Assembly: GCF_001194135.2 (NCBI RefSeq)
Contig: NC_068987.1
Coordinates: 62,178,770 to 62,242,769 of the forward strand
Reading direction: 5' to 3'
From: Octopus bimaculoides
Lineage: Eukaryota
Length of the DNA stretch: 64,000 nucleotides
Positions 33,406 through 61,060 of the stretch are shown here, in pieces (the stretch's first letter is position 1; every line of letters begins with the position of its first letter). Below the pieces are notes generated by a model, which was given only the letters and a program-made list of their open reading frames with translations, was not told the origin of the DNA and did not search any database. Both the position numbers and the translations under genes were made by a program.

Positions 33406-36398
33406 GTGAGAGCGATTGTTTATCAACAATTTAATTTTTTTCTTCTTTACACCATTTTCTGCGCCAACAGTGTTTGAATAAAATAACTAAAGTCTGTGCT
33501 TATTCTAGAAACAACCTATCTAGTATTTATATCTTGGGTGAGAGTGTTAATTTTTGTTAATCTTTTTTTAAGTTGATTTGAATCCAACGATAATACTGTT
33601 TCAACTTGTTCGTCTTCAGGATACATACACAGTTTCAGTTGGGTCAATATACTGTACTTTTGTATATATTAAATGTCTAAATAATAAAAAAAAAAAAAAA
33701 AATTACTAGTAGGCATTCATTTAATCTTAGTATGAGACTTTATAAATGATATAATGAATTTATTGATCTCTTTTTACCTTTTATCATTATGCCTGCTTCC
33801 ATTTATATTTTAGAAACATCAGTGACAGCAAAATAGATAATTATATATTTAGGTCATTAAATAAAAATGGTGTTTATTTGGTTTTATAAAATTTATTAAC
33901 AAGCTATTATAATTGAACTTTCACTTGTAGTGGGAATTAAAATTCAACTGGTAAAAGTGATATTTGTTATTCAGATTATTGATATCACCTTATACACGAT
34001 ACTTATTTATCAGGTAACATATTGCCATCAAGAAATAATTAGTTAATTAATTGTAAGAGAATTCTGTTGCTTGTTCTGGAAATTCAGACATCCTAGATAA
34101 ATAAGTGTAGCTAAACTTTAAGAAGTACAAGTGAGATTTTTTCAGAAGTTGATTAAGGGCTAGACATGATGCCTAAAGATGAAGGCAGTTTTCTATAATG
34201 CTGTATCAGAGACTAGGTTTTGAGCCCTCCCCACCACTACTAAAAGAATGTACAGTAATGCTTTGAGTTAATTTGTTCCTGGAGACTGCTCATAAGGTGG
34301 GAACTCATAAAGCAGACCAATAATTTCCCATGGTAGCAATGTTATAAATTGTAATTCATTTCCAGAAAATATCTTACTTATAAAATTTATAATACTTGTA
34401 AATAAATGGCAATAAAACAATAGTAGAATGGAATGAATATTTTATGTAAAGTAAAAAGAATGTCAAGATCACTCATAATTAAAAATATTATTATTATAAT
34501 CATTTTCACTCACACTAGACTTGTATTTATTTTATCAACCCTGAAAAAAAAAAAATCAACCATGGCAGTATTTGATCTCAGAATGTAATGATGCACGAAA
34601 TGCCACTAAGCATTTTGCCTGGCATACTAATAATTTTGCCAGCTTGCCACATTGATGACGATGATCATAATGATGATGATTTCAAATTTTGGCACCAGAC
34701 TAGCAATTTTGGGGAAGGTGTAAGTTGATTGCATTGACCACAGTACTCAACTGATACTTATTTTATTGACCCCCAAAAGGATGAAAGGCAAAGTTGATTT
34801 TAGTGGAATTTGTACTCAGAATGTGAAGATAGATAAAATGCCACTAAGCATTTCACCTGACATGCTAACAATTCTTCCAGCTCGCTTCCTTAACAATAAT
34901 AATAATCATCATCATCATCACCACCACCACCACTGCTGCTGCTGCCACCACCACCAGCACCAATATAGGTGCAGTATGGTCAAAAAGCTCATGTTGCTAG
35001 GCTTTGGCTCCATTGCACAGCATGTTGGGCAAGTTTCTTTGATTACAGCCTCAGATAATCAGTGTCTTTTGAGCGAATTTGGTAGAAGGAAACAATTTGG
35101 AAGTCCATCATATATATGTGTGTGTGTGTGTGTGTTTGTCTCTGCCACTGCTTTACAACTGGTGCTGGTTTGTTTACATTCCTGTAATTTAGTGGTTCAG
35201 CAATGGAGACCAATAGAATAAGTATTTGACTTAAAAGTAAGTACTAGGGTTAGTTTCTTCAGCTGAACCTTTTAAGGTGGTTCCCCAGTATGGCTTCTGT
35301 TCAATGACTGAAAAAAGTAAACAATAAAAGAATATGCTTAAGAAAAAACAAAAACAAATTAACTCGCAAAGCAACATTCCTTGTAACATGATTTGAACTT
35401 GTAGTAAAGGACCCTATGATAGAGCACTTTAACCACTCTACCACCGTGTCTCTATTTTATGCAATGGGGCAAGTGTTTGTCACCTGTAACAGTAGTTGGC
35501 ATTTATACAAGTTATCAACAAAAACTGCTTTACATCATTATCTTTCTCAATACCTATTCAATAGTCTATTACTGCCTGGCGTTGATAATAGCATCCTTTT
35601 ATAATGACACTTGGATTACTGGAATTAGTAGCATAGCAGATTAGCATTTAGCTTTATTTAATTGATTGAATGATTATTGTTGTTGTGAGCTGGCTTGTGC
35701 TTAAAATATATTTACATTGGACATGTTTGTGTGTGTATATGCGTGGCAAGTGAGAGGGAAACAGAGAGAGAGAGACACTCACACACACAATTTGCGTTTG
35801 AATGTTATTGAGATGGATGCAAAATATCAACAACTTACAGAGTGGTTTGGGATTAACAGAAAATATACATTGGGAAATTTCAATTTATTTTTTCAACTTT
35901 TACTTGTTTCAGTCATTAGACTGTGACCATGCTGGTATCTTTGCTTTGATAATACATGGTAGTTACAAATGAGTGTCTCTTTCATTTAAACAGTGTTATT
36001 CATTTCTGCATAAACATGTTTGGCTATGGGGATATATTACCTTGCTTGGAAACAGATGGTGATTGGAAGGGCATCCAGCTATAGAAAGTCTGTCTCAATA
36101 AACTCTGTCCAATCCATGTAAGCATGGAAAAGTGAATGTTACAATGATATTGACTGTGCAGGGTAAATAATTCATTTATAATAACAGCAAAAAAAAATAT
36201 ATTATACTTATGCAGGTTGAAATTAAACCAATATTCTTAGTTTCAAATGAAATTTCACTGAGGAACCTATGTAAACATTTGACCATCTGTATAAAGATTT
36301 TATGCAAAGCATTTTACTTAGAATGTTCTGTAAATATGTATGGCTTCATAAAATGTGTTAACAGTTCTTATGTAGTTTTCTCCTTTTTTCAATTTCAG

Positions 36399-36616
36399 CT
36401 GACGCCCTAGCTACAAAAGGTGTAGTTGTGAAAGGTTTGCGGAAACACAGAGGCCCCCGATATGGTGTAGTACATTACAAATATTGCAATATTTACATAC
36501 GCTTAAGGGAAGGCTCACCACCAAAACACTACTACCCGGTAGAGGAAACAGGATACGAGAAACTACAAAATTACCTGACTGAACAGAGAAAACGCAAAAT
36601 CATATTTTCTCTTTAA
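36399..36616 (+). CDS. MRPL22: MRPL22 exon 7, terminal coding part (218 nt)
   Basis: Encodes (A)DALATKGVVVKGLRKHRGPRYGVVHYKYCNIYIRLREGSPP...RKRKIIFSL*. Total CDS is 660 nt (219 aa). Confidence 0.96.
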
Positions 36617-39678: not shown

Positions 39679-39709
<31 letters not shown>

Positions 39710-40389
39710 GAAATATATGTAATTAGTGATGCCCAGAGTATACAGCTTACATGTTTAGAGTATAATCACTTATCAACAGAGTTTGGTAAATTAATTGTCA
39801 AAACAAGTCAGAAATATCAAGAGAAATAAGAACATGGTGATTTCTAATTAATTTGAAGTAATCTGGAATTATGCTACTGGAAAATGATGGTGACATATGT
39901 AATAGAACCCAACACTGTAAGTGAAGGCTTTCTTATCAATTTGATAGTAATTAACTACAGAGATATATTTTGGATCTAGTAGTAAGATTTAGTGTAGCTA
40001 GTACTGTAGGATGGCACTTTGTCTTTGGTGAATCAAATCTATCATTTGAAACTACTTCCACTTATATTGTTATTGGCCTTAGAATATTGTGACTTTCAAT
40101 TATTTTTCTAATGTCTTGCCTATGTAAAAAATTATATTATTACAGTTGTTTTTATTAATGGTTTATTCTTTCAGAAAACTGTATGAGTGTTATTAGTCAC
40201 AGTCACTACAATTGCAGATGAAACATCTAATGGTTACTAATTCATATCAACAGACTAGCTTGGCAAAAGATATCAGTAAATGTATGGTCTAAACCAAGAA
40301 TTGTATAACATCATCATCATGCACTGGATATATTAACACAGATCCTTAGAGTGACTTTGCAAGCTGAAGAGACTTTCTTTTATGCAACG

Positions 40390-43300
40390 TTATGTGTCTT
40401 TTTCTGCCACATCAGCAATAGTAGACTGAGGGGTATCTGTACTGCCTTCATTACATTCTTCTAAGCCTGTATTTCCATCAGTTGCTATTGTATTGCCAGC
40501 TGTGTCATCCTGCGATCCATCTTGGCATTCCTCTTTGGAAACTGCATAATATGAAGCTAACATTTTAGCATAACCTGTATCATCTTTATTAAGTTCAAAA
40601 TCTAAGGATAAAGATTTACTATCAAACCAACAATCTTCACTGTCAGAACTGGATTTAGTTGGTGAATAGTAAGATGCTGAACTTATTTCACTATTGTCTG
40701 TAAATTCTATATTTCCACCAGTTTCAGCATTGTTAGTGGGTGATGTTTGTTCATCTTGGCATATGCTTGCTGATATTTCAGATTCTACCTGTTCTGGAGT
40801 CTCACAAGTCATTGGCTGGTTTTCAGAACAGCTTTCATTTCCTAGAGGCATGTCAACCACTGTATCACTAGATCTATCACTTTGTTGATTGCTGTCATTA
40901 TCAAAATTTTCTCCCAGAGTAATATGTTGGTCTGTTTGAGACAGATTATCATCGCAACAGTCTTTTCCACTTGAGTTGTGTTCTTCAGAACAATTGCTTT
41001 GCTTAGTTAAGTTATCTTCAGTTGCAATCTGGTTTGATTCAGAGATATTATTACTATCTGCACTGAGTGGCTCACAGCTTTCAGTTTCTGTCAGTGGTGA
41101 CTGATCTGATTCAGTAATATTCTGGACAACTTCATTGGTTACTAAAGGTTGATGCATTTGGATTGTATCCTTCGAAGTTTCACTTTTTGTAATTGATTCA
41201 TCTTGAATATTTGATGGCAACTCTTGGTTAAGGTCACTTTCAGTAAATGTACTCTCTTCCCTTGCAGAAATATCCTTTCCATCATTTTCATTTGTAGAGA
41301 TTTCTGACTGTGTATCATGTATGCTTTCCATATCTGTAGTTGTTACATTCTTCTTAGCTGCTTCATTTCTGCAATCTTCATGTGGTGATGAAGGATATTT
41401 TGAAGAAACACAACATACATTGTTATCAATCGGCACACCTTTAACAGTTTCAAGATTAGAGTCAATATTGTCAGAAACGCTAACTATTTTAGCTTTAGGA
41501 TACTTATTCTGTGGAATCAGAAAGAGAAATCCCATGCTGTCAACATCTTCATCAATTCTCTTTACTGGGGAGCTTAATGGAGAAAAGATAACTCGATTTG
41601 CTCGTATTTCTTCTTCCTCTTCCTCAAATGAAGATTCTGTCATTGAATTTGATGGAAAAAAATATTGTGGGTGAGGAGAAGAAGCTCGGGATGAAGATTC
41701 AGGACTATTTTGAGGACAGAGTGGGGACTGTCGGCCAGATAAATTAATTTTTTCTTCAAATTGTTTGGTAATTTTTCTAACAGGAGATTCTTTTGGTTTG
41801 TTCAAGTCCTCCTCGGTTGGTTGATTTAACAAATAGCTGTGATCTGTCAGAAAAGCATCAGCAAAAAGTGCACAATCTTTAATTATATTGGATTCAATCT
41901 CTTGGGAATTCCGTCTTGGTTTTCTTGGACAATCTATGTTATGTAGCTCTTCTTGATTTGTTTTAAACATAGAGTTTGTATCTTCAGTGACCACTTCTTC
42001 CATAACAGTATCTAGTTGATGGGGAATTGGTGTTATCCTCCCCGTTCGCTTAAGAGAATCGGTAAATGCAGCATATTCTCTGAAGGCATTCATTTCTGCT
42101 TCAGTAGCATTATATGGTAATCTGTCCCATCCCTTTTGAGAGAAAGCAGGATTCATTCTACTGTCTCTTTGATTGTCAGGAATATTTTTGGTAGTTTCTG
42201 AACCCTTTTCTGCAAGAAACGTTCTGATCTCACTGCTAATTGAGCCTACAAATACATTCTCTCTTTCATTGTCTTCATCTTTGACAGCAGGTGCAATATT
42301 GTCATGTTGCATGGTGACACTTTCAAATTCAGACTCAGAGTTATGTGTTAACGTTTCTACCTTAAATACTTTTGTTTCTTCATCAACATCGATAGAACAT
42401 TCTTGGAGATTTTTAGTTGGTTTTTCTGACACTTCACTATCTATGGAAGACATCTGTTCTGATTCACTAACAATGGTAACGTTATATTCTTTAAAATATT
42501 CATTTGAACTGTCAGAAACATCACTTTCTTTCGAAGATGTTTCTGTCGAATCTTTGACATTTGAAGGGCTACATTCTTCTTCAAGGTTTTCAACCAAAGT
42601 ACTTGGTAGTTCACAGTCTTTAGAAGACATCTGTGTTGATTCAGTAAATATTTTCTCAACATCATGAGGATTCTCTTTTGCAATTCCTTCCAAAATGTTT
42701 TGTAACTCACTATCTTCTGCAGATAATTTTATTGATTCAGTGATTATATCATTAACAAATTTTAGAATCTGATCATCTTGATATTTACAGAGGGAATGAG
42801 GAGAAAGCTCTGGAGATACACCGCTTTGTTTTTCAGGAAGCTTTATTGTAATATCCTTTAGTGTCACAGAACTTAATGAAATATCTGCATCTACATCATC
42901 CAAAACACTTGGAGAAACCTGAGAGCAACGTCTAACCATAGAACGTCCTCTTTCCCTTGGAACAGAAATAAATGTATCATCATCATCACTTATAGAAGGT
43001 GACTGATTATACTTACTTCTAGCAGAATATTTTAAAGGAAATTTTATATTTTCAAAGTCTTCAGAGTCTGTAGATTCTTCAGCACTGCTACTTGGATCAT
43101 ACTCATTATCATCATCACTGAGAATTTTTTCTCTCATGTTATTCTTTTCTAACATATTAGGTAAGACACTTGTTTGCAAATGTTCAGACTTGGTATGGTT
43201 TTCTCTATCATCCTCCACTTCACTTTCCAGTTCATTTAGTTTGAATGTCTCGTCTTTTGTAAATTGACTGCTTAAATTTGGGGCACTGTTAGCAAAGTCT

Positions 43301-44398
43301 TTGACAATGGTTTTTGTTTCATTAAGCTCAAAATGTGGGGAGTTTCCAGCACTCTTTGATTTCTTTGTCAGAAAGTTTTGAGCTGTTTCGTCAATGGTGA
43401 TGAAATCTGAATTTGTATTTAGATATTGCTGACTATCACTATTCTCTAATTCACTTAAACTATCCGATTCATAGTTTAGACTTGCTAACATACTTTCATT
43501 TAGAGTAATGTGTGGAATAGAAACACATGAAGAATTTCCAGATACTGAACTTCGTCTATCATTTGAATAATTTGGCATTAATTCCTTTTTATTAGGTCCT
43601 TCTACTATTGAAATAAATGAACCACTAGCATTTGATGAAGTTTTGACAAAGGTTGGAGTAGACTGGGAACTGCTCTTTGCTAAACCAGCTTCAACATCTT
43701 CTATAGAGTTTGCTACATAAATGATATCATTGCCACACATCACAGCACGTAATTGAGGTGTATGTTCTGAAATGTCATCTTTTGGACCATCTGGAACTGG
43801 GCATTGTGGTCCAATAGTAGGTGTACTCATGAAGTTTTTGCAGTCATTCTCATTTTCTTCTTCGGGTATATTTTCAAGATTATTTTTTACATCATAATGT
43901 GATACATATATGTCAGGAATTGAATCCTCATTGCTAATTTTGTTAATTGAGTCCATGTCAACCACTTCATCACAAGAAGATGGTAATTTTAGGTCAGGTA
44001 AAGCAATATCACTAGCAGACATTGGACCTGTAATAGTGGGTTTTGGTTTTTGCGTTGCTTTTGAAGAAATTTCCATTTGCAGAATTTTGGGATCTTCGGT
44101 AATCTGTATTACTGTTTCATTAAGAGTAATTTCAGGTTTTGGTACATGCAATGGAGTTGGGCTACCATCTCGATCAAAATCAACAGCAAAGTGGTCAGGA
44201 ACTGGATTACTTTTGCTAATCATACCAAAGGTTGTAATAGTGTTTTGGGGCCCAGTGATGCAAGAAATTCCCATTTCATTACTAAGCGAAGGGCTACTAT
44301 TAAACTGGTATGGACTGTTCATGTAATCATCATGCCAGGAAAATGGCATACCAGCATTGTTACCACTCATATCATGACTTCGGCTTGTTGGAAGATCA
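40390..44398 (-). CDS. Giant terminal exon of an uncharacterised acidic, Ser/Thr-rich, probably disordered protein (about 1335 aa; 1326 aa from the first in-exon ATG at 44370)
   Basis: Stop-free for over 4 kb in AT-rich DNA, with no indels or TE insertions. tatttcag acceptor at 44399-44400 coincides with the compositional switch. TAA at 40390-40392. AATAAA on - at 40151-40156 and 40162-40167. No transposase, RT or folded-domain motif recognised. Confidence 0.88.
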
Positions 44399-45766
44399 CT
44401 GAAATACATACGTAAAGATGATTTTGTAAAAGTGGCTGGTAGATTGTGCCATGTTGTCATAGATATGTGTAAATAAAAAATAGGCAACAATGCATTGTGT
44501 ACTCTATAAAACACTGTCTTAAAGAGGATAAAGCATTGAGTAGGGAGAATTTCAGAAAGTGCAAACTAAATATGCAGTCTTTAAAAACAAGTGCAGGTTT
44601 GTCAAGAGTTAATATCCCGCCAAAAAAGGCGTTATGCAGAAGATGTCCATTACAAGGACATCAAGTTACAATGCGGAGGATGACAGGGAATCCCAATAAG
44701 TGACTACTGAAGTGTGACATCTAATTTCAGCTGTACATCATATGGTGAGTAATCACTGTATGCCATGAAATACATTTACAGTCAGTTGTGCTTTAAAAGT
44801 ATGGACAGATTTGGCAGCCATTTAGGTGTAGAATATGTTTAGACAGTTGTGCATCAAAAGGACAAATAGAGCAGACGACCACTGAAGTGTTACATTAAGT
44901 ATATCTATTGTCAATCATGCAACATGAGGGCAGGTAGTTCAGGTAGCCAATGATGTGAAACAAACTATATCTGTTGTCAGTTGTAGATGGGAAAAAGTAG
45001 ATAGCTGATGTGACAAATGAGGTATGATTAAGGCATATTCAGCATCAGTTGTGCATCTATAGGATAAATAACTTGAGCAAGTGTTGAGGTGTGATGTAGA
45101 GTGTATTTACTGCTCTGTACATCTCAAGGTCAGGTAGATTAGAAAACATAGCTTATCAGGTGTTTATGAAAATTAAGCTCTGGTTGCAAAAAGAAACATC
45201 ATGAGGTATATCAAATGCATTGATTGTCTTTGAGGTAGATAAAAAACATGAAAATTTGTTTCTGTGAGATCAGCAAAAAGTATATCAAAACTCCAGCAAG
45301 AGTAGGATAATCTTTGGTAACATAATAATGTAGCTCTTACATTCACTTTAATTTAGCTGTGTATATAATTCTGAACCAAGATTTTCATTTCTATAGTAAT
45401 AGTTCCACAGTACCACTGTTACTTAGGCATTCATGACAAAAAAGAACTGGTGATATAGATGAATGGATAACACAATGATGTACCTGCTCATAAGTTGTGA
45501 GTTCAAATCGACTTGAGTCATTTTGTTGTTTCTAGGCATAATTCTTTATACTATACTTCTGCTTACCTACCTATTGGTAATAAGCATGTGAACGTCTGCA
45601 AGGGCTACAGTATTCTATCCACTGGTGAGAGTAACCTCTGGTTTGTTTCCTGCTTTGAAACTGGAGCAAAGAACCAATCCTTAAAATTCCTGAAAGGTTT
45701 TGGAAACATTTACATGTTTCTTTCATGATTGCAATACTAAGTGTTGAGCTGTATGAATGTAGTTAC

Positions 45767-45887
45767 CAAAAAGTAATGAAATGATGGAAACTAAAAGAAA
45801 TTTGACTTCCTGTGTTATTTGCTGGTGGTGGTATCTTTTCCTGTTGTCGAAGGTCATTCAGTAAAAGATCTATGTAGCTCTGTCTGC
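45767..45887 (-). CDS. Putative upstream exon B of the giant-exon gene (121 nt, phase 1-2)
   Basis: ttcttcaacttccatacag acceptor and GTAACT donor; encodes (G)RQSYIDLLLNDLRQQEKIPPPANNTGSQISFSFHHFITF(C); in frame with the giant exon. The 3' third is T-rich and could be intronic. Confidence 0.3.
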
Positions 45888-46227
45888 CTGTATGGAAGTT
45901 GAAGAATTTGGTTGGATTTTTAAAGGATTAAATCTGAAACACTCATTATGTTATTTTATTTACAAGTATTCTACTTTACAATACATATGCATGCACACAT
46001 ACACACACACACACGTACACATATGCACCTGCATGTACAGGCATTGCTATTGGGTTAAGAAGTCTGCTTTGTAACCATATAGTGTCATGTTTAGTTCCAC
46101 TATATGGTACCTTAGGCAGGTGTCATCTACTATGGCTTAGGGTTGACCAATGCCTCATGAATAAAAATTAGCTGGATAGAAACTGTGGAAGCATGTTGTC
46201 CATATATATATATATATATATATATAT

Positions 46228-46694: not shown

Positions 46695-48542
46695 GAGGGC
46701 TTCCATGCAGTTTCACAGACACACACGTGTGTGTGTCTGTGCGTGTGCTTGTGTAGGTCTTTATAATGCCACCATTCCACTGACAGTGATAATGTTTATG
46801 TCCCACACAAGCAAAAATTCTGGCACTTCATGTGAGGTCATGAAATAAAGTACTTTAGTTGAAAACAAGCAAAAGTCAGTGTCTGGAAGAGCATGTAGCT
46901 GTACAAATCCACAAGCAACAAATCTTGTCTAACCCATGCCAGCATAGAAAAGCAGTGGATATATAAAGAATATTGATGATGACAATGATATACCACAAAT
47001 CTGTGCACTCATACATATACATACTCGCAGGTGTACAACTGAAACAAAATATAATATAATAATAATATAACAATAATCCTTTCTACTAAAAGCACAGGAC
47101 CTGAAATTTGAGGAGAGGACTAGTCAAACCCCAGTGTTTCACTGGTACCTAATTTATCAACCCCAAAAGGATGAAAGGCAAAATCGACCATGGTGGAATT
47201 TGAACTCAGAACATAAAGATGGATGAAATGTTGCAAAGCATTTTGCCTGACATGCTAACGATTCTGCCAGCTTGCCACCTTAACAACAACAACCCTTTCT
47301 ACTATAGGCACAAGGTCTGAAATTTTTTAGGGTATGTAGGGGCTAGTCGATTAAATTGATTCTTGGGCTCAATTGGTACTTATTTTTATCAATCTGAAAG
47401 GATGAAAGGCAAAGTCAACTTTAGTGGAATTTGAACTCAGATCATAAATATGGTTAGAATACCACTAAGCATTTTGTCTGGTATACTAACGATTCTACCA
47501 GGAAGTTGGTCAATACTGTTGACACCAATAGTGTATTGGTACTTCACTTTACTGAGTCTGGAAAGATGAAAAGCAAAGCTGATCCTGACAGGATTTGAAC
47601 TCAGAATGTAAAGAGATGGAACATCTTTTAATGCTTTAATACTTCTGCTAATCTAGATACAATTCTGAATTGCAACAATTAATGATAGCAAGGTCTTTGA
47701 CAAGAATGCCTTGAATAATCACATTTGCTGTCAATATTAGCCAAAAAATATCAAGACGGACAAATTTTTCTATGGATCTAAATTTCTTAAAGCCTGTGTT
47801 GTACATTTTTAATATTATGTGATATTGAAAAGATATTAATTGATTGCTGTTTAAGTTACAATAGTAAAGGACTATGCATTGTTAAAAATAGTATAGCTGT
47901 GTGGTTTAAGTTAATTCCTCACCATGTGGCTTTCGATTCTGTCCCACTGCATGTCTATATGTCTAAACTCGGCTTGCGAAGACCTGTTGGGGCAAGTGAA
48001 ATTGAAATCATGATTGAACCAAATTCAATGACTGGCACCGGTGCCAGTGGAGTCCTAAGAGCACCATCCAAGCATAATCATTGCCAGAGTAGCTGTCTGG
48101 CTTCCGTGCCAGTGGCACGTAAATAGCACCATTTGAGCGTGATCATTACCAGCGTTGACTTACTGGCACAGGAGCCAGTCCACTCGCCAATTAATACAAG
48201 AAATCATCATATAGATATTATCATTGCTACGATTTTTCAAGATTGTTTGCAATCATTTTACTCTAATTTGTTTGTTTAAACATTGCATGACACACAATTG
48301 CAAATAATAATCTACGGAAAATTCTTATTTCTTATTAAATAGTGTAGCTCATTAGATCAGCCGAAGGTCTTAAAGCCATTCACCATATTTGAGAGGATTA
48401 AGAAAAAAAATGTAAATAAAAGAAGAGAAAAAAGAACAAAGTACTCTAAAGATAATTATGAAATAGATTAGTTCTGAAGTACTTGATATAACGACATTTC
48501 TATTTAGAAAGCCTGTGTTGATTAAATCTGGGATAATCTTAC

Positions 48543-48561
48543 CAGAAAAATTATTACTCAT
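48543..48561 (-). CDS. Putative first coding exon A of the giant-exon gene (19 nt)
   Basis: CAAAATG start context; encodes MSNNFS + G; GTAAGA donor in phase 1, compatible with exon B. Speculative. Confidence 0.2.
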
Positions 48562-50584
48562 TTTGTTTTGATATTATTCACACAACAACATACAACAGTC
48601 TAATGCTATTTTATAACATATTCTTATAATCTCTTTACTCTGGATTAGCTACAGTAGTGTTTAGGCATGTGTTAATGTTACACTCCCCTTTTCCCTGCTA
48701 CCATTCACTTCAAGTATCACCAAAGGATGTTCTGTTATAGTTTCATTCACATCTACAGTGCTTTATTAGAATTGACTCAGATTGCTACTTTATTTTATCA
48801 ACCCAGGAAGGATAAATGGCAAAGTTTAGCCACTGGCCTCAGCAAGATTTGAATGCTGCCATTTTCTCTCCTCAGCCCTCTTTCACTTTGCTGTCAATCC
48901 TCTGTTGATTTTAAACACTCCAATGTTTTACTTATGCAACTCTGCATATTTTGATAACACTGTACTTTCCACTGCTAATGTCAGCATATAAGCCATGTGA
49001 CCACTTGTTTCATTAAAAAAAGATCTTTCTTTCATATAAAAAAAGATCTTCCTTTGATATCATTTCATTTTGATAGGACTCACACAAACTGACCATAGTT
49101 TTCCTCTTTGCAGGATATAATGATAAGAAACAAATCAAGACCCTGTATCAACAGTATGAAGGATATTAACAAGATTATTAACATGTAAAAAAAAAAGTAA
49201 ATTGTATTTAAAAACCAAATATATTGATACCAAAATACCTTTGATGATAATGATTTCATCAAAAAGAGAAATTTTACAGAAATAAGAGTATATTAAATCA
49301 TTTGTAGTAAATTGTGTGACAGTGGAGGTATTTATGTTAATAGCTCTAGCTGCAGTGACATATTTTCAATAATACTTAAAATGGATAGTGGTGCAGAGCA
49401 GCTAAATAAATACATAAGAGTATTTAGTTTTCTCGCTCTCTGTTTCAAGTTTAAATCTCGACAGAGTCAGCTTTGTCTTTTAACTTACTGGTGTTGAGTA
49501 TACTTTTCTTCTGTTTGGGTTCAATAAAATAATTCAATTGATTATACAGCTTCCTCAGTAAAATTTACCTCACGCTTACATAAGAAATCAATAATAATAG
49601 CAGAAAATAAAAGAGTCAGCAAAAATGGCAGAGTTTCAGATTTGATAGTCTTAATAAATTTAGTTCTCTCTCTCTCTAAACAACCCCAGTTCAAATTTCA
49701 AAAGCTTCAACATTGCATTTCATCCTTCTAGAGACTATAAAATAAGTAATATATTAACTGTACCAGCTGTATGAAAATTTCTTTTGTTCTCACATGAGAA
49801 AAGGGTATTTGTAACAGGAAATAACTGTTAACAAAACATGTAGAATGTATTCATGTTAACTTCTTATTTCCTTTTAGAAAGTCACATGTAATTATTCCTA
49901 AATGAGATACTTAATCTCAGTAAATAAGGCCTATCTTTTTAAATTATTATACTAAAGTGCATTTAGAATGATTTTCATTTTTCTGAAAAGCTAATTCACT
50001 ACTGCTTCAATATATTTTCCCCATGTTCTTATAAAATTTTAGATTCTGGACTTTATTAATCAACTGGCAGTTTAGAATTTAATATTGTTTTATATGATGG
50101 CCATGCAATAGAAAGCAAGGATCAGTGAGATTTTCAATTACTATTATTACTGTTGACATATAGTCAAAGAATGAGTCTTGTAGTTTTGTTAGTAGCTCAT
50201 GTTTGACTACAATACCTGTTTATTGCCTCTAAGCTACTTCTAACTTCAGTTAGGTATCTTTTTCACCTTGTCAGAATAGGAAGGAAATATTAAAAGCAAT
50301 GTTTTTTGCTTTGGTCAAACTGCAAGTGTGATGAGAAAATGTTAAATAGCATCTGGCATAGTGCTTTGCATTTACAGACATATTTTGCTTATTTCCTTTC
50401 AGAAAGTACCATTCTTGTATCAAAACAAAGATACAATTATTTTACAACCTTTAACATTTAGGCTTCATTTTAATGTAAAATGTTGTTTCTTATTCAAAAA
50501 TCCTTTTTCCTTCTTGCAAAAGTGGAAAAATAACAGCAGTAACTCACACACACAACTAACATTTAACAAAGTGTTTGTTCAGAC

Positions 50585-50767
50585 TTACTGTGGATCAATA
50601 CCCAAAACTGAACAGGTAGTGTGCCATATAGCTTGTTGAAGCTGCATGGAATTTGACAGTTTACTGGATGTAGCTTTTTCACAATTTTCATAGTAACCAC
50701 CACTTTGCTTCTCGAGGTCTGGAGATAAGGCCACATGTAAAACTGTATCTGCACCCTGTTCAGGTGT
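50585..50767 (-). CDS. DHRSX: DHRSX-like SDR, terminal coding exon (183 nt)
   Basis: tttttcag acceptor; encodes TPEQGADTVLHVALSPDLEKQSGGYYENCEKATSSKLSNSMQLQQAIWHTTCSVLGIDPQ*. Confidence 0.9.
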   Translation of the reverse strand, partial: TPEQGADTVLHVALSPDLEKQSGGYYENCEKATSSKLSNSMQLQQAIWHTTCSVLGIDPQ

Positions 50768-52188
50768 CTGAAAAATAATAATAGATAGAAAGATCACAGT
50801 AAAAAGATCTTATGAGAGAAAGATCTTATTATGTGAGTAAAACATTAACCTAGTTTTGAGTGTTGTTAATATTTAAACTAAAATCAGCTCTAAGTGGCAA
50901 TCTTGTTTTTTAAGATTATATTATCTAAAGCATCCTTCAAGTATTTAAGGCAGTAAGGAGAAATTTGAAGAAAATTTAGCTGCTACTTTTAGCATGTTGG
51001 GGCATCTCATTGGTTCATAGCCATAGGTATTATAGTTGATGTCAAAAGACTGTTCTCACATCAGCTATCATATGTAGCCCCTATTCAGAATCAGAATATA
51101 GATCTAATGATAACTGGCCAAAACAAACTAGGCAGTCATACCTCAGTAAGCTAATGAAATACTTTTAAAATGCTTCTGACTCCCAGTGTCATAATATTTA
51201 TTTATAACTATACATGCCAAGCAAGCTTGAGTTAAATGTTTTGGCCATGGAAACAGAGTAGCACTGACTTTAGTAAATATACTCTCTAAACACTGTTTAA
51301 TATTCCTCAGACACCCTATTGTCTCAGCTGCAATTCTCATTAAATCTGAGCCATATAAATTAATACTTAAATACATGGACTGAATCACACCCTATAATTA
51401 GTTAAACCAATGTGGTTAACTATTAGATGAATTTATGCCATCAGCCTTTTTTTTTGTTATTTACTCATGAATACTTTCAGTTGATCTAGTAGCTTTTTAT
51501 CTAACCCCTCTTTTGATACCAAACTGCCTAAGGCTGTCTTTGGTTGTATGATACAAACTTCATGTTTTAACCCTTTGAAACAAAGGCAGAGGTTTTTCAA
51601 CAAAAATATAATAACAAAAAGGTTAATCTCTGTAAAGTTACTATGGTGGTAATTAAAAGAAAATGCAACCAGTTTACTTAGCAGAGTATTATCCAATTAC
51701 ATGAATTTTTGGATACGTGGTCGTATGTCAATGTTGTAGAAACAAAATAACCAGGTGAATAAGATATTAAATGACTAACTGATGAGTCTTGAATCCAAAT
51801 CAGCTAAATATATATTTTGTTGCATTTCTAATTATTTACTGAACTGTCAGAAATAGTAGATATTCTGGGAAATGGCTTGGAGTATTGGCCATCCATTATT
51901 AGAGATAAATCTAAGATGGCGAGCAAGTAGAATTGTTAGCATGCCAGGCAAAATACTTAGCAGCATTTCATCTGTCTTTACGTTCTGAGTTCAAATTCAG
52001 CCAAAGGTGATTTGCCTTTCATCATTTTTGGGCTAATAAAATAAGTACCAGTTGAGCACTGGAGTTGATGTAATTGACTTGCCATGTAAGATTAAGCAAT
52101 TGACTATACTTATTGCACAAGTGCAGAGGTTAAAAGTAAACAAATGTGACTAGTATGAACCTAACATTAAAATAATTAATTTACTTAC

Positions 52189-52408
52189 CAAATAAAAGCG
52201 ACTAATTAAGCAGCGAATTAATGGCACTGGAAACACAGCATTTGAATGCAAATTAGTATCGACAACTCCTGGATGAAGAGTATTCACAGTAACACGAAAG
52301 CATTTGGCTGCTTTTAGCCTGCGAGCCAGCTCGTAGGTAGCCATAATCATTGCCAGCTTTGATTGAGAGTATGAAGCATATGGAGAATAACGTGATGGTT
52401 TTGCTCCT
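52189..52408 (-). CDS. DHRSX: DHRSX-like SDR exon with catalytic YxxxK (220 nt)
   Basis: Encodes GAKPSRYSPYASYSQSKLAMIMATYELARRL...VTVNTLHPGVVDTNL...RFYL; canonical splice sites. Confidence 0.93.
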
Positions 52409-52465
52409 CTGAGAAGAAAAAAGAAATTAAAAAGAAAAGTGAAAAACTGGGAGATACATATATTA

Positions 52466-52679
52466 TGAAGAGGTGCTGAAAAGTTCCTAGCTTTGAGAGT
52501 ATTGTGAAAGCCTAGTTGGAGGCCCAACCTTCCAGGTTCTTTTACAGGGCTTAGAAAAACTGAAGGACCATTGCAGTAAGTGTGTAAACCTGAGAGGGAA
52601 TATGTTGAATAAACTAATAATTAACTGATCCTTCTGTATTTTCTTTTACACAAAGCCAGCAAATTTTCAGCACCCCACG
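52466..52679 (+). mobile_element. Mariner-derived MITE with TIRs and TA TSD
   Basis: TA-TGAAGAGGTGCTGAAAAGTTCCTAGCTTTG ... CAAAGCCAGCAAATTTTCAGCACCCCACG-TA; internal remnant LEKLKDHCSKCVNLRGEYVE* resembles a mariner C-terminus. Confidence 0.75.
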
Positions 52680-52958
52680 TATACAGGAATACACAGGTGC
52701 ACACGTGTGCGTGTGTGTGTGTGTAGTTTGAAGTTCATTTCACAACCATGTGGTTTCAGGTTCAGTCCTACTGCATGACATTTTGGTCAAGTGTCTTTTA
52801 CTATAGGCATAGGCTGACCAATGCTTTATGAGTGAATTTAGTTGAACAGAAACTGTACAAAAGAGTAAGAATAGTTTAAAATTACTAAATTAAAGAGGAG
52901 AATAATACAAAACAAAACAAAACCTGAAGACAGTAATAATATAAAGGTGGTGACTTAC

Positions 52959-53166
52959 TTAGAAGTGAAAGTTGACAAGTCTATATTTCCAACACGGTGT
53001 GTTGAAGATGAAACATTTACAATCCTAGCAAATAATTGATTTGTGCCTGACATGTTGAGGACAGGAAGTAGCAAGATACTGAGCAGGAAGTGTCCCATAT
53101 AGTTTACAGCTATGTGCTTCTCTAAACCATCTTCAGTTTTCTTGTAAGGGACATACATGACACCAG
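52959..53166 (-). CDS. DHRSX: DHRSX-like SDR exon (208 nt)
   Basis: Encodes (A)GVMYVPYKKTEDGLEKHIAVNYMGHFLLSILLLPVLNMSGTNQLFARIVNVSSSTHRVGNIDLSTFTS(K). Confidence 0.93.
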
Positions 53167-53627
53167 CTGCAAAAGAGGAGTAATAAGATATGACAATGAT
53201 ACAGTAACATAGATTTCTTTATGCAAGGCAAGGGCCCATTTTCTCAGTATTTTTAGAAGTGAGACCTAGTTGATTAAATCAAGCTTAAAGGAAGGAAATA
53301 CAAAGTTGACTCCAGAGAAAATTGGAACATGAACTGTAAAAGGACGAAATTAAATGTTGTTGCCACTGCTATCATCGTTGTCAGTTTGACATCCATGTTT
53401 CCATGCTTGCATGGGTCAAACAGAATTTGTTGAGGAAGATTTTCTACAGTTAGATACTCCACCCTTCTTGCCCACAACCCTCACCTGTTTTTAAGTGAGG
53501 TAATATTTCTACAGGGCTGGGTTATGATTTCATGGAAGATTGGAAAAGAACACCACTTGTATAACAGTTATGGTTGTTTACAACCATTTCACAATGTCAA
53601 GTCAATGAGACATATCCACCCCCACCC

Positions 53628-53713
<86 letters not shown>

Positions 53714-54061
53714 ACACACACATACATAATGAACTTCTTTCAGTTTCCATCTACCAAATGCACTCATAAGGTTTTGGTTGTCCAGAGCTATAGTAAATGA
53801 CACTCACCCAAGGTGCCATGCCGAAGGCCTGAACCTGAAACCATGTGATTGGGAAGCATAAATACTGTGAGATACATAAACATATATACATAAATAAATA
53901 ATGATAGGCTTCTTTCAATTACTGGGAACAGCAAGGATTGTAAGAAAGGTTTTTGATATCTAAAGAAACTGGTTGTGGTCTGGTATCAAGGACATTGATT
54001 CCAAATGTAAAACATCAGTGTGCACCATGATTAACAACAACAATAATAATAGTAATGCAAA

Positions 54062-54928
54062 AAATGGCATTGGAGGGGCAATGCATACCTTGCGCGCAGA
54101 TAAATTTTTTGGTAAATTATAATGTGGCTTACAATGCGTTACTTATCCATGCTTTTTAATTGACCTGAATTAAACTTTGTAAGTGTTTGACTAAACTTGC
54201 TTATCGAGAAATTTGTAAGTTTGATTTTTTTAACAATTTTTTTTTTAAGTATCATCTTTATAAGTGTTTATACTCTGGTGAAATTAAGAAATCAACTTGT
54301 AAATAAATGAAACTCTCGAATCCATCACTGTACACACTGACGCACACACACACAGTTGCATATGTATGTATGTATGTATGTATGTACGTACGTACCCACA
54401 CGTATCTACATGCATAAGTACACTGTGATCTATACACATGAAAAAAAAAGTGAACGAAATGAAATACTTATAGAAAATATTGCAAAGAATTTGAGAAGTG
54501 CTTTGAATGTCTTTCAATGATGGCAGGTGAATCAAATGTACTGTAGTTCATTTGAGGATATAAATAATATGATCATTTGCTTATTGGGAAATTTGTAAGC
54601 TTGATTTAAAAAAAAAAAAGAATTTATTTTAAGTATCATCTTTATAAGTGTTTATACTCTGGTGAAATTAAGAAATCAACTCGTAAATAAATGAAACCCT
54701 CAAATCCATCGCTGTACACACACACACACACAGTCGCATATCTATGCATGAATTCATGTATGCTTAAAGATAATCAAACCAAATTTTCATCATTTCAAGT
54801 CGCTCACCCAATGAGTATTTGCCAAATTTGGTGAGAATCTGTTCAGCTGTTTTCAAGAAAGTTTGCAAACACACAGACAGAGAAAGACTAGTAATTACAA
54901 AACCCTGCTTTTGCTTATGCACGCAGGG

Positions 54929-54935
<7 letters not shown>
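54062..54935 (-). mobile_element. Helentron-associated interspersed element (HINE/DINE-1-like), apparently complete
   Basis: subTIRs ACCTTGCGCGC (54087-54097) and GCACGCAGGGT (54919-54929). Inner palindrome ACCCTGC (54902-54908) at one end; GCATTG/CAATGC hairpin (54067-54084) next to an A run at the other. Internal repeat with 380-bp period. Confidence 0.65.

Positions 54936-54980
<45 letters not shown>
54932..54980. repeat. (TAA)n microsatellite abutting the HINE end
   Basis: Perfect TAA array. Confidence 0.97.
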
Positions 54981-54981
<1 letters not shown>

Positions 54982-55191
54982 GTTTCAAATTTTGGCACAA
55001 GGTCAGCAATTTTAGGATGATGGTGTTTGTTAGTTACATTGATCCCAGATCTCAAGGTAAAGTCAGAGTTTACCTTGGTAGAGTTTGAACTTAGAATGTA
55101 AAGAGATGGAAGAAATTCTATGCAATAATGATGCTGCCAAAAAAGTGAAAAAGGAAATATCGAAAAAGATCATTGCTTTGAACAAACATAC

Positions 55192-55293
55192 CATTGTTAA
55201 TCAGCATATGAAGAGGAAGCCTACGAGATTTGAACTCATATGCAAATTTGTGAACAGACTTCATTGAGCCAAGGTCAACTTCAAATCCTTCAA
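55192..55293 (-). CDS. DHRSX: DHRSX-like SDR exon (102 nt)
   Basis: Encodes (I)EGFEVDLGSMKSVHKFAYEFKSRRLPLHMLINN(A); forms NNAG with the next exon; GTATGT donor. Confidence 0.93.
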
Positions 55294-56196
55294 CTATAAA
55301 AAAAAGAAAAAGAAAAGTATTTGATTTAAGGAAAAAAAATACTAATGTAGACATATAGTAAAGTTGAGAGTTTGTGACCTCTCACTGTTAAAACACACCA
55401 GTTTTGTTTCAATTAATTTTGAAAATAATAAAGAACTTATTAAAATAACTTTGTAATTATTAATCTGGTGTTTGGAACATAAATTTGCATGAAATGTTGA
55501 TGGAAGGCTATAATTAAGATTAATTTAAAACAGGGAATATGTATCATAGATCTAGAGGCAGTTTCAAGTAGGTTGGTGGCCAAAAAGTAAAGGGTAGTTA
55601 CATAGAGGTCTCATGAAATTTCTTGAAAATATATTTGGATAGGATCGATCTTTCCTCATACATTCTTGTCTATGTTAACTACTTCAGATAGGCATATTGC
55701 ATGCTAAACAAGGCAAGCTAGAGGTTATCCTAGCCACCACAATATTACAAGATGTCTGTGTTCACTCATAGGAATGCCAACTGCTATTACGAAATTTGTC
55801 CATAACAGAATATGAGCTCAGCATTGTGAACTTACATAACATTTATCAAGTACATTAGTGACAAGCTCACTTTAATTCAAAATTATGTCTATTTACAGGT
55901 TGAGAGTTAAATTATATCTGCCAGAAACATAGTTAAGTGTTAGATATCTGGCCGAGGCACATGTGAATTTTTGTCTTGAAATATGAGTGGAAATCTGCAG
56001 TGCAAGTGAGTTTTATATAAGGGACCGCTAGTCAGCTCTGAGCTTGCACACACTCTACCAACAAGGGCAGCCTCTGCTTGCTCAGTTCACATGTTTATCT
56101 CATTGTGGCAGCATTTCTGTTGTGTTTTTCCCAGTGTTTTCTTTTTAGTTTTGGGTGTTTTTTGCTATTATTTTATAATAATTAATAGTGTTAGCC

Positions 56197-58227
56197 ATGG
56201 GTCCTAAAAAGGTTAGTGCAAAAGACTGCTAAGAAGAAAAAGCTGATTATGATAGAATTGAAGAAGGAAACCATTGATTGATGTGAGAGAGGAGTGCATG
56301 TAGTGGGCATAGCACGTCGACCATCTGCACCATCCTGAAGAAAAAGGACATGATCAAGGCTGTTACAATGCACATCTGTCCACAAAGAGATGGAATAATT
56401 GCTTCTCCTGTGGATCAATGAGAAGCAACTTCCAATGGGGTATGATTACGGAGACCATTTGCGAGAAAGCACAAGAGCTGTATGGGGATCTCCTGAAGCA
56501 GAACCCTGGAATATCCTCAGAGTAGATATCAGCAAAAGCATTTAAGGCCAGTTGTGGCTGGTTCAATAATTTCAAGAAGTGAACTGGTGTTCATAATGTC
56601 AGCAGGTATGGAGAAGCAGCGAGTTCTGACACAAAGGCAGCTGAGAATTTCTTGTGTGAGTTCCATCAGCTCATCGCAGCCAAGGGTTACATGGCATAAC
56701 AGGTATTTGACAGTGATGAAACTGGCCTTTTTGGAAAAAAATGCCCAGAAGAACCTACATAACTGCAGAGGAGAAGAAAAAGCCAGGTCACAAGCCTATG
56801 GAAGTTAGGCTAACTCTCATCCTTTGTACCAAAGTGAACGAAGACTTGAAGATTAAGCTGATCCTTGCTTACCATTCTGAAAACTCATGAGTGTTCAAGT
56901 TGTACAAAATCCAGAAGGAGAAGCTGCAGGTCATTACAGCCTGGGTTGCCACGCAATTCTTCTCCAAGTGGGTCAAACTTATCTTTGGACCAGCAGTGAA
57001 AAAGTACCTTCTGGATAATGATATTCCTCTCAAGGTCCTCCTCATCCTCGACAATGCTCCTGCTTACCCTCCTAATTACAAAGATGATACCCTGATAGAT
57101 TTTAAATTTATAAAAGTTCTATACCTTTCACACAACACCATCCCTATCTTGCAGCCCATGGACCAACAGGTGATTTCTAATTTTAAGAAATTGTACACCA
57201 AATATCTGTTTCGTCGGTACTGTGAAGTCATCAAAAATACAAATCTAACCATTCGTGAGTTTTGGAAGGAGCATTACAACATTGCTAACTGTCTGAAAAT
57301 CATTGATGTGGCCTGGCAGGGTGTAATGAGAAGAATGTTGAATTCTGCATGGAGGAAACTGGTCTGATTGCGTATCCAAAAGAGACTTCAAGGTGTTTGA
57401 GTCTGAGACACCTGTAGTCAAGGAGATAGTGTCTCTTGGCAAGTCCATGGGCCTCAAGGTTGACAATGGGGACATTAACAATCTCATCGAGGAACACTCA
57501 GAAGGGTTTATGACAGATGAACTCCTGCAGCTTCAGGAGCAGCAGCATTCAGGTGCAGTGGACAAGATTAGTTCCCCAGTGGAGGACAGTGTAGAGGAGA
57601 AGGCTATCTCTATGAGTGACATAAAGGCAGTATTGACAAAGTGGCAGTATGTTTCTGAATTTGTAGAAAAATATCATTCTGATAAAGTATCTACAGGTCA
57701 TGCGGCTGCTACATTTAATGACACTGCCCTGGCACATTTTGGTAACATTTTGAAAGGAAGGAAAAAGTAGACCTCTCTTGATGTTTCTAATGAAACAACC
57801 TGCAAGTGTGAAAAGTGAAGAAAGTGTGTCCAAAATGCCTAAATTAAGTGAAGTATGAGAGAAAATGCCAGAAATTGTTCTTCCTGAGGTCATAATGGAA
57901 GGAGATTCTCCTTCCAAACAATAATCTTCCTCCTCCCTGATCCAGCATCTTCCTTGCACACAAATTGTCACATCTTTAAGGTAATTAAATTAATAAAACC
58001 ACTTTACATATTTTTTTTGCATTCTCTTTTATTATGATTTTACAATTGTCATTTTCCTAGTAACTGCACCTTTTCTGTTTTAAAACCCATAAAAAATGAT
58101 TTTTTGGTGGTTTTGTGGGCCTGGAACAGATCAATTATATTTTAATTAATTTCAATGAGGAAAATTGATTTGTAAAATGAGCTTGTTCATGGAACAAATT
58201 AAACTCGTACTGCAAGGTATCACTGTA
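56197..58227 (+). mobile_element. Tigger/pogo transposon, near full-length decayed transposase with 3' TIR
   Basis: MGPKKVSAK start; FDSDETGLFW, LLILDNAPAY and LQPMDQQVISNFK DDE motifs; stops and frameshifts; ends ...AAGGTATCACTG-TA (58225-58227). Confidence 0.9.
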
Positions 58228-58299
58228 CAATATTAGATTGAATAAGGCTGCTGACCTTGCTACAGATAGGGACCAGTGACAAGAATAGACAGGCTGCCA

Positions 58300-58528
58300 C
58301 ATTTTCTGTTGAAATACATTGCCTTTGTTTCAGTTAATGTTGAAATTAATGAAGAATTTAGTAAAATAGTATCACAATTACTAAGTTGGTATTTAATAAT
58401 ACCAACTTAGTACCAAAATATAAACATGAAATTTTGATGGAAAGATTTAATCTAATTCAGTTTAAAACAGGAAATTTGTATCAAAGAATTAAAGGTAATC
58501 TCAGGCAGGTTGGTACCAAAAGGGTTAA
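58300..58528. mobile_element. Second piggyBac-type MITE family
   Basis: Ends GGTACCAAAAGGGTTAA. Homologous segments at about 17830-18045 and 55385-55595, and reversed at about 860-1075. Confidence 0.6.
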
Positions 58529-58656
58529 CATTGTGGTGGACTACTTCTAAGAGAAATGGAAATGGGTTCAAAAGAAAAAGAAGGATTTCATTTAAAATCT
58601 TTGATCTTTTAATGTCTCAATTATATTAACAGAAACAAAATAATAGATCTACTTAC

Positions 58657-58725
58657 TAACTGCGTCTGGTTGTTCTTTTTTGATGTCATCAATAGCTTTC
58701 TGAATGTGCTTCTTACAACGGGATG
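58657..58725 (-). CDS. DHRSX: DHRSX-like SDR exon (69 nt); upstream exons with TGxxxGxG are outside the window
   Basis: ctcttcag acceptor; encodes (A)SRCKKHIQKAIDDIKKEQPDAV; GTAAGT donor. The 69/102/208-nt exon series and phases match what I recall for human DHRSX; RDH11-14 paralogy is not formally excluded. Confidence 0.85.
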
Positions 58726-59329
58726 CTGAAGAGATAAATGGTACGTTATCCTGAGACCAAGATAATATTTTATTTGATAACCATGCACATATTTATTCAG
58801 TTTTTATAGAAAATGCATACATTTTGAATAATTCCTCAAAACTTCTGCTCTGCCTCAATACTTCTAGATGTATGTGTGAACTAATTTTTTATTTATAAAT
58901 GTTTTTTTTTCATATTTCCTTCCAGTCTCTCTAGACCAGAAGATAAGGGTTATTGGACAAGCTTGGTGCAGTTAATGTTCAGCTAGGAATATTACAGATT
59001 GGTGGAAAAATATAGGTAGGAAGACAGTTCTAAAAGGTTCCTATTTCAATGTATGTGTGTGTGATCTGGTTTCAGGAGAATGTCATATGGATGGTCTTCC
59101 TGTGGATTTAATTAAGGACATGAGTATGGTTTATTATTTACAATGGCATTAACAATGATAACAATGACAGTGACAATAATAATGATGATGATGAAGGCCA
59201 CCACTGCCGCCGCCACCACCACCACTACCACCAGATGTGTTTCCTAACATTTTCCTAGGTTCATTTTTTTTCATACCAAAGCACTAGAAAGATAGCCATG
59301 CCTATGACAAGACTGAAGGGTCCTTTCAA

Positions 59330-60100: not shown

Positions 60101-60394
60101 GATAATAATGGTTTAATGTTCATATGCATTGCTATAGGCAACAAAGAACAATGGGAATGTTTAATAATTGGTAAAATCATCAACGCTGAATTTTAAAATT
60201 ATACAAGGTTTAACCCATTAGTATTTAAACAGGCCATATTCAGCTTCACACTGACCAGATCCAGCTTCTCACACCTACCCTACAATGTCATTCTAAAAAT
60301 AAACAACCATCACTTCAAAATCTCAAAGCTGTAAGATAATACAGGATTAACTTAAGTAACAGTTTCTATAGTTATTCTCATTTTTTTTTTTTTG

Positions 60395-61060
60395 TGGAAT
60401 TCAAACCTGGACGATTGTAGATATTCTCCAAATGTCCAAATCGAGTGTTGGAAACCATTTGCATCAACTTGATTATGTCAGTAGATGAATCATTGCAAGA
60501 ATGTGAGGGAAACAACCCTTTTTTGAAGAGAAAGGTGACAGGGGATGAAAAATGGATTGCCTGTAACAATGTGAAGTAGAAATAATCATAGGGAAAGTGC
60601 AGTGGACCACTACAAGCAACCTCCAAAATAAGACTTCACCCAAAGAAGATTATACTTTCAATTTGGTGGGACTGGAAGGACAGAACCATCTATTTAGATG
60701 TGTACTGTGACCAGCTGGACAAATTAAATGCAGCAATCTACCTGAAGCATTCAGTACTTGCTAATTGTAAGGGTTGTCTTTCAATATGGCAATGCCAAAC
60801 CACACACTACTTTGCAAATACAGTAGCAGTTATCGGGGAAGTTTTGCCAAACCATCCATATTTGTTTTATCTTGTGCCTTCAGATTTCTACCTGCTTCAG
60901 TCCCTTCAAAATTCATTGAACAGACAAACCTTCAGCTATGAAAAGGATGTAAAAATTTACCTGGAAGAGTTTTTCACTAATAAAGACAGGAAATTCCTTT
61001 AGCAGGGAATAATGGATCTGCTCTAATTTTTTGCACAAGGCCAGCAATTTTGAGGAGAGA
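60395..61060 (+). mobile_element. Degenerate mariner (DD34D-type) transposase
   Basis: FLKRKVTGDEKWI, LHPKKIILSIWWDWK, YCDQLDKLNAAI, HPYLFYLVPSDFYLLQSLQNSL...FFTNKDRKF. Confidence 0.88.

Follow-up and report, generated by a model that had tools for sequence, protein, structure and literature searches.

A giant open reading frame beside octopus DHRSX as a probable alternative terminal coding exon shared by coleoid cephalopods

Some membrane-anchored proteins, such as the endoplasmic reticulum (ER)-phagy receptor TEX264 and the tethers of lipid droplets and the ER, carry long cytosolic disordered tails in which linear motifs are embedded. DHRSX, an enzyme with a short-chain dehydrogenase (SDR) fold, is typically much more compact. 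Outside the cephalopods, including in the molluscs Gigantopelta and Argopecten, the protein measures ~320–350 amino acids and ends soon after the SDR fold. DHRSX is a polyprenol dehydrogenase and dolichal reductase that catalyses steps 1 and 3 of the revised route from polyprenol to dolichol, and it was given this role in dolichol biosynthesis only in 2024 (PMC11250103). The human enzyme possesses a hydrophobic N-terminal helix and localises to the ER and, above all, to lipid droplets (PMC11250103). Here we examine DHRSX in a 64,000 nt stretch of the Octopus bimaculoides genome (contig NC_068987.1, positions 62,178,770 to 62,242,769; hereafter the window), where, in contrast to the enzyme elsewhere, a choice between splice sites appends 1,335 residues, or four times the enzyme's own length.

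The element that encodes these residues is a large open reading frame (ORF) on the minus strand of the window. We consider it very probable that this ORF is an alternative terminal coding exon of DHRSX that is ancient and common to the coleoids, and that a single donor serves two alternative acceptors here. An earlier note on the same DNA, prepared from the letters alone, had called the ORF an orphan between MRPL22 and DHRSX. Both flanks are indeed as described there, as the ORF is bordered by the last MRPL22 exon (36383–36508, plus strand), which is convergent with the gene carrying the giant exon, and by the DHRSX exons (50589–58726, minus strand). The orphan status does not hold, because the exon is part of DHRSX, which the note treated as a neighbour, and already forms the 3′ part of the NCBI gene model LOC106884525.

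One donor and two acceptors at the 3′ end of DHRSX

The ORF spans positions 40390–44514 of the minus strand, which also carries all DHRSX features described below, and comprises 1,374 codons, counted from the earliest potential start, within a stop-free run of 1,391 codons. The runner-up among stop-free runs, whichever of the six frames is read, measures 222 codons. Given that stop triplets occur at a frequency of 0.062 in the window, a run of 1,391 codons would arise by chance with a probability of ~5e-39. Within the giant terminal exon, the coding sequence (40390–44398) comprises 1 base, 1,335 codons and a TAA stop at 40392–40390, and encodes the acidic, Ser-rich tail of a long DHRSX isoform. 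Its product is 100% identical to residues 335–1669 of the uncharacterized O. bimaculoides protein encoded by LOC106884525 (P0001, 1,669 amino acids), which was recovered by protein search. The exon is preceded by the distal 3′ splice site (44399–44421), a polypyrimidine tract and AG that read tcatctttacgtatgtatttcag, with the AG at 44400–44399, and that are followed directly by TGATCTTCC. The first exon base (44398) is a T that completes a split codon, and whole codons begin at 44397.

Downstream of the stop, AATAAA is present at 40167 and 40156, which are 222 and 233 nt past the TAA. The earlier note had reported a stop-free run of more than 4 kb on the minus strand, an acceptor at 44399, a TAA at 40390 and AATAAA ~230 nt further on, and each of these landmarks is where it was placed. 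RNA contigs of both isoforms all end at a (TA)n tract (window positions 39680–39700, ~39683), ~700 nt past the stop. As these contigs run on to ~39683, the two AATAAA sequences are not the sole 3′ end used, and the 3′ untranslated region (3′UTR) common to both isoforms (39683–40389) extends at least to this tract.

In RNA, a single donor (after 50589) is joined to two acceptors, 44398 and 45887, each of which has a polypyrimidine tract and AG. The donor terminates the last SDR coding exon of DHRSX (50589–50768), which was located by tblastn and sequence and encodes ...TPEQGADTV...SVLGIDP plus the bases CA. The donor reads CA/gtaagt, with GT at 50588–50587, and is preceded by GGT ATT GAT CCA CA; the donor of Argonauta is identical. 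Read-through of this donor gives CAG TAA. The fusion junction, from 50589 to 44398, is present in three RNA sequencing runs (X6, X7 and X9). Each of these runs yields a contig in which 30 nt of the giant exon (44369–44398) are linked to the end of the SDR exon (TGTGGATCAATACCCAAAACTGAACAGGTA on the plus strand), as well as a separate contig of ~4.7 kb that starts exactly at 44398, and the loose ends at 44398 match the end of the SDR exon. The depth across the giant exon in X6, X7 and X9 is 321, 119 and 114, respectively, and the depth across the 1.5 kb upstream is 0, 10.7 and 7.8. The junction is in frame, with CA and T forming a His codon, and the product of 1,669 amino acids consists of DHRSX followed by the 1,335-residue tail. 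A giant alternative last exon had been among the options raised in the earlier note, which proposed a search for RNA junctions into 44398 as a check; the contigs joining 50589 to 44398 in these three runs, with exon depths of 114–321, favour that option.

The proximal acceptor, which is absent from the earlier note, corresponds to the 3′ splice site caaattcttcaacttccatacag (45888–45910). The junction from 50589 to 45887 that generates the short form is found in ten runs (X1, X3, X4, X5, X8, X10, X11, X16, X17 and X18), with a flat depth of 9–35. In all of these except X11, loose ends at 45887 match the end of the SDR exon, and X11 provides the same connection from the donor side at 50588. In that run a 7,025 nt contig links the SDR exon to 45887 (ccatacag followed by GCAGACAGAGC) and is then colinear through 44398. 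Transcripts retain the segment 44399–45887 only if they are spliced at the proximal acceptor; this segment supplies the 11 codons with which the short isoform ends (QQTELHRSFTE) and a TGA stop at 45856–45854, and then continues as 3′UTR into the giant ORF. The short form, which reads ...GIDPQQTELHRSFTE, encodes a canonical enzyme of 344 amino acids, and its 3′UTR holds the entire giant ORF. The Octopus vulgaris model P0004 ends in the identical 11 residues.

On the basis of these contigs we are highly confident that DHRSX makes two C-terminal isoforms by alternative choice of 3′ splice site. The fusion predominates in only a few of the samples, and in most samples the ORF is untranslated 3′UTR. 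Because the use of the two acceptors differs sharply between samples, the tail is a regulated add-on to the enzyme.

The runs also differ from one another at individual positions. At 43787, a C>T difference (plus strand), fixed in a subset of the runs, turns the GGT of tail codon 204 into GAT and so replaces Gly by Asp, and a G>A polymorphism (plus strand) between runs is located at 44448, just upstream of the distal acceptor. RNA editing was considered for these recurrent differences and rejected, as neither is an A-to-G change on the transcript, and they are therefore single-nucleotide polymorphisms. Inside the ORF, at 44251, a GGGCCCC run is one base short in the X11 contig, which would shift the frame; this deletion occurs in 0 of 9 raw reads of other runs and is probably an assembly or sequencing error. 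In the last DHRSX intron, a 165 nt block (48501–48657) is 74% identical to positions 44936–45097 of the Argonauta sequence L001, where donor, block and giant exon follow in the same order. This block may act as a conserved regulator of splicing, or it may be a repeat present in both species.

Conservation of the giant exon and of its splice junction

The ORF, with 1,335 codons in O. bimaculoides, is intact in four species overall. A second Octopus species (Logan contig L002) carries 1,337 codons with 84% amino acid identity, and Argonauta hians (L001) carries 1,271 codons with 53% identity and has MRPL22 downstream in conserved synteny. In the cuttlefish Acanthosepion (Sepia) pharaonis (P0124 on L003) the ORF extends to 1,566 codons with ~29% identity, and the conserved islands are colinear with those of the octopods. 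L003, which bears the Sepia giant exon, is 2,550,903 bp, equal to the contig bearing the cuttlefish DHRSX. The Nei–Gojobori ratio of nonsynonymous to synonymous substitution (dN/dS) is 0.39 both against the second Octopus species (dS 0.19) and against Argonauta (dS 0.75), with values of 0.07–0.16 in conserved islands and 0.6–0.9 in the linkers. The coding sequence of the tail is under purifying selection.

That the ORF is a real, selected coding sequence, as the earlier note had proposed, is in keeping with its intact state in four species and with this dN/dS of ~0.39. The suggestion that it might be specific to cephalopods is likewise borne out as far as public data go. An exhaustive hidden Markov model search of 1.84 billion representative proteins returned only P0002, P0003 and P0124 and no relative outside the coleoid cephalopods, and a four-species profile searched through a word index gave no further relatives. 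Altogether only four relatives emerged from searches of 5.8 and 1.84 billion proteins, and all are syntenic, being located next to DHRSX or MRPL22. The Sepia protein P0124 carries, at residues ~1190–1290, ~7 tandem copies of CPVEQATSPEIEPD and a Pro/Lys-rich block (PPVAKKPVRP...), both of which are absent from octopods. Judged from this comparison, the linkers of the tail module seem to expand freely.

The distal acceptor (tatttcag or catttcag), its phase and the first residues DLP(T/S)SRSH(D/E) that precede the first Met are the same in all four species, and this Met, ten codons into the ORF, is also conserved in each of them. Above the acceptor, an in-frame stop is encountered after 6 codons in Argonauta and after 8 codons in Sepia, and ungapped identity upstream of the acceptor drops to 36–47% in Sepia. 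Within the nine codons that precede the ATG, Octopus and Argonauta differ at 4 sites, all of them third positions, and Octopus and Sepia differ at 8 sites, 7 of which are third positions. Given that these codons are conserved with changes at third positions, and that the coding signature begins at the AG, translation enters the ORF through the splice junction. For the same reason, the stand-alone models of the ORF in Sepia and O. vulgaris most likely reflect misannotation of an arrangement identical to this one.

We also considered whether the ORF is a separate single-exon gene that has its own promoter and starts at the conserved ATG, so that the fusion junction would be minor or incidental. 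This arrangement has a small chance of being correct. It would account for the split annotations in O. vulgaris (1,361 amino acids) and S. pharaonis (1,566 amino acids), for the retention of the Met in all four species, and for the many RNA contigs that are colinear through 44398. However, the colinear contigs are explained by the junction at 45887, which makes them the 3′UTR of the short isoform. Moreover, the nine pre-ATG codons evolve as coding sequence, the AG and polypyrimidine tract have been kept over the octopod–decapod split, and the contigs with the highest expression start exactly at 44398 and are joined to SDR exons, with an upstream coverage of 0 in X6.

Still less probable is a downstream cistron, in which ribosomes would translate the ORF on the short-isoform mRNA after reinitiation or through internal entry in the many tissues where it is part of the 3′UTR. 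Such a cistron would be in the right place, as in ten runs the ORF follows the stop of short-isoform DHRSX by 1.46 kb on the same mRNA, but no signal of a type with precedent is present, the spacer is not conserved in Argonauta, and the conservation of pre-ATG codons points to entry by way of the splice junction. Finally, a chance, decaying or transposon-derived ORF without host function might be expected to show no recognisable domain, a biased composition and intron surroundings rich in transposable elements, as this one does, but its probability is negligible given the length of the stop-free run, the single copy with four syntenic relatives only, the intact frame at a dS of 0.75 and the lack of any reverse transcriptase or transposase match in Pfam. 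This rival as a whole is refuted by the dN/dS of 0.39, by how few relatives the search of 1.84 billion proteins returned, and by the coding character of the pre-ATG codons; a transposable-element ORF specifically is countered by the absence of a Pfam match and by the small number of relatives, all of them syntenic, among the billions of proteins searched.

Several observations weigh against an alternative terminal exon of DHRSX, which remains the explanation that we prefer. Logan contigs from three runs are the sole source of the fusion junction, and sampled raw reads across 44398 (X19–X21, ~6% of each run) are all colinear; ~6 raw reads that span this position in X19 and X20 are unspliced. 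The support is at the level of RNA and sequence, and for Sepia and Argonauta a fusion is predicted from conservation of the sequence. In addition, RVIF, SEDFENI and IIKDCALFADAFLTD, the candidate motifs of the tail that suggest partners, are kept in octopods and not in Sepia.

The short ends of DHRSX have a different history from that of the giant exon. Decapodiform DHRSX transcripts keep the IDPH junction and then continue into an unrelated end exon of 27 amino acids (HEMQMKPESEV...KKKED). A search for this exon gave no match in the window or in Argonauta, nor in sequence up to 10 kb from the giant exon of Sepia. The short ends are thus particular to each lineage, and it is the giant exon that has been conserved.

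The tail and its possible role

Among the 1,335 residues of the tail, Ser (14.4%), Glu (10.3%), Asp (8.5%), Asn (7.6%) and Thr (7.2%) together make up 48%, and the net charge is −143, much as the earlier note had described in calling the protein acidic and rich in these five residues. There are 68 S/T-x-x-D/E sites. Seventeen islands conserved in a three-way comparison account for 324 of the 1,335 residues, and two aromatic-rich peptides singled out in that note both reside in the tail and within conserved islands. The islands that last to Sepia are FSWHxDYMNSPYQ, RAVMCGNDI, LNESML, ERGRxMVRR, YQDxxILxFVNxIITES, AFxQKGWDRLP, QLDTV, CPQNSP and SEDCWFDS.

The note had recognised no domain in this protein, and the searches agree. 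A Pfam scan of the tail returned only a sub-threshold match to Pyr_redox (E 0.71) and no match to reverse transcriptase or transposase, and PDB sequence and profile searches with the tail gave nothing meaningful. Structure prediction, which had been suggested as a check, produced no confident fold, with AlphaFold mean predicted local distance difference test (pLDDT) scores of 30.7 for 1,148 amino acids and 47.5 for the best-conserved 256 amino acids. Isolated helices were predicted at tail residues ~533–589, 766–784, 837–857 and 872–886 and at the C-terminal YAKMLASYYAVS. These models indicate that the tail is largely disordered apart from a few short helices.

The pattern of the RVxF motif by which proteins dock on PP1 ([RK]-x(0,1)-[VI]-{P}-[FW]) has a single match in the tail, RVIF at residue 935, which is invariant in the three octopods and aligns with QLFF in Sepia. 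The strict pattern of the VAP-binding FFAT motif is absent from the tail, and SEDCWFDS, which is only loosely FFAT-like, is invariant in all four species. The sequence SEDFENI, which resembles an Atg8-binding LIR, is found in octopods only.

The long isoform consists of the N-terminal hydrophobic helix, the SDR enzyme and the acidic tail, in which ~17 short conserved modules that comprise about a quarter of the residues are set among fast-evolving linkers. To judge from human DHRSX, the helix would anchor the protein on the cytosolic face of the ER or of lipid droplets, and with the enzyme on this face the tail would be expected to extend into the cytosol. In this position the helices and linear motifs that it has conserved, a large share of them Ser-containing or acidic and probably phosphorylated, would dock partners on the surface that bears the enzyme. 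Alternatively, the tail might serve to regulate the enzyme.

A hydrophobic N-terminal anchor, a compact domain and a long acidic disordered region with short conserved modules are features that the long isoform would have in common with TEX264 or with lipid-droplet/ER tethers. The octopus tail differs from these proteins in that it has no sequence similarity to them, and SEDFENI and RVIF are not conserved in Sepia; we do not claim that it belongs with them. We tentatively suggest that the tail may serve in the cytosol as a scaffold or tether at the surface of the ER or of lipid droplets. We are more doubtful of an extended proposal, in which the giant exon, and not the short ends, would be the ancestral coleoid terminal exon of DHRSX, and its tissue-specific inclusion would make a cephalopod-only ER or lipid-droplet scaffold or tether that links the lipid supply for N-glycosylation to another process.

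The upstream gene, its annotation and significance

Residues 75–334 of P0001 were mapped by tblastn to five exons between 58726 and 50589, on the same strand as the ORF. In addition to the last SDR exon described above, these are located, with approximate limits, at 58658–58726 (amino acids ~75–97), 55190–55297 (~97–132, with NNAG), 52958–53167 (~132–201, with NVSS) and 52189–52410 (~201–274, with the catalytic YSQSK). No exons for amino acids 1–74 were found by tblastn within the window. The N-terminus of P0001 carries adh_short domains (precomputed Pfam matches PF00106 and PF13561), and its motifs are TGGTTGIG at 51, NNAG at 130, NVSS at 182 and YSQSK at 214, so that the Rossmann cofactor motif TGxxxGxG, NNAG, the catalytic Ser and YxxxK of classical SDRs are all present. 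The best named non-cephalopod matches of this N-terminal part are DHRSX/polyprenol dehydrogenase proteins of ~330 amino acids from cnidarians to mammals, with identities of 41–49% over 87–99% of the query, as judged from best matches. By this comparison, the N-terminal 334 amino acids appear to be a full-length DHRSX orthologue that includes the hydrophobic N-terminal helix. The A. hians protein P0003 (Ahia01_000106500) has the same fused architecture as P0001.

Two further observations concern other DHRSX proteins and the far end of the window. The decapodiform DHRSX proteins P0006, P0007 and P0008 contain, within the SDR fold, a 14-residue insertion (VDYTGCTSLL[DG]NNA) that P0005 lacks; an alternative micro-exon or retention of a segment might account for it. 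At 1607–1969 the window has a translated match resembling the tail of a reverse transcriptase (KERRLRWFDHVERM...) in common with positions 60260–60627 of Argonauta L001, and this is a retroelement remnant, which agrees with the mention of decayed transposable elements in the earlier note.

Public annotations treat the locus in conflicting ways. The fused models (LOC106884525 and Ahia01_000106500) and the split or stand-alone models (O. vulgaris and Sepia) all describe one ORF at a shared syntenic location, and they are mutually contradictory and unnamed. In O. vulgaris (GCA_951406725.2) the locus is divided into a short DHRSX and a single-exon gene of 1,361 amino acids that starts 1.4 kb after the short model, and in S. 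pharaonis CAE1246591.1 is a stand-alone model of the giant ORF with 1,566 amino acids. The presence of two splice forms in RNA explains this disagreement, and of the two readings it is the fused frame that has been conserved. A literature search on LOC106884525, and on DHRSX with cephalopod terms, found no description. What was already known is the fused NCBI model, without a name; what is new is the regulated two-acceptor mechanism, the conservation of the junction across coleoids and the restriction of the tail to this group.

The two splice forms thus reconcile the conflicting ways in which this locus is annotated in the genomes of four cephalopods, and for annotators they carry the caution that a long conserved ORF within a '3′UTR' can be an alternative coding exon. 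For the coleoids themselves, the tail represents a lineage-restricted module of 1,300–1,560 residues, without a known homologue, that has persisted since the octopod–decapod split. It offers a testable case in which a lineage-specific disordered region has been joined to a conserved metabolic enzyme by regulated splicing.

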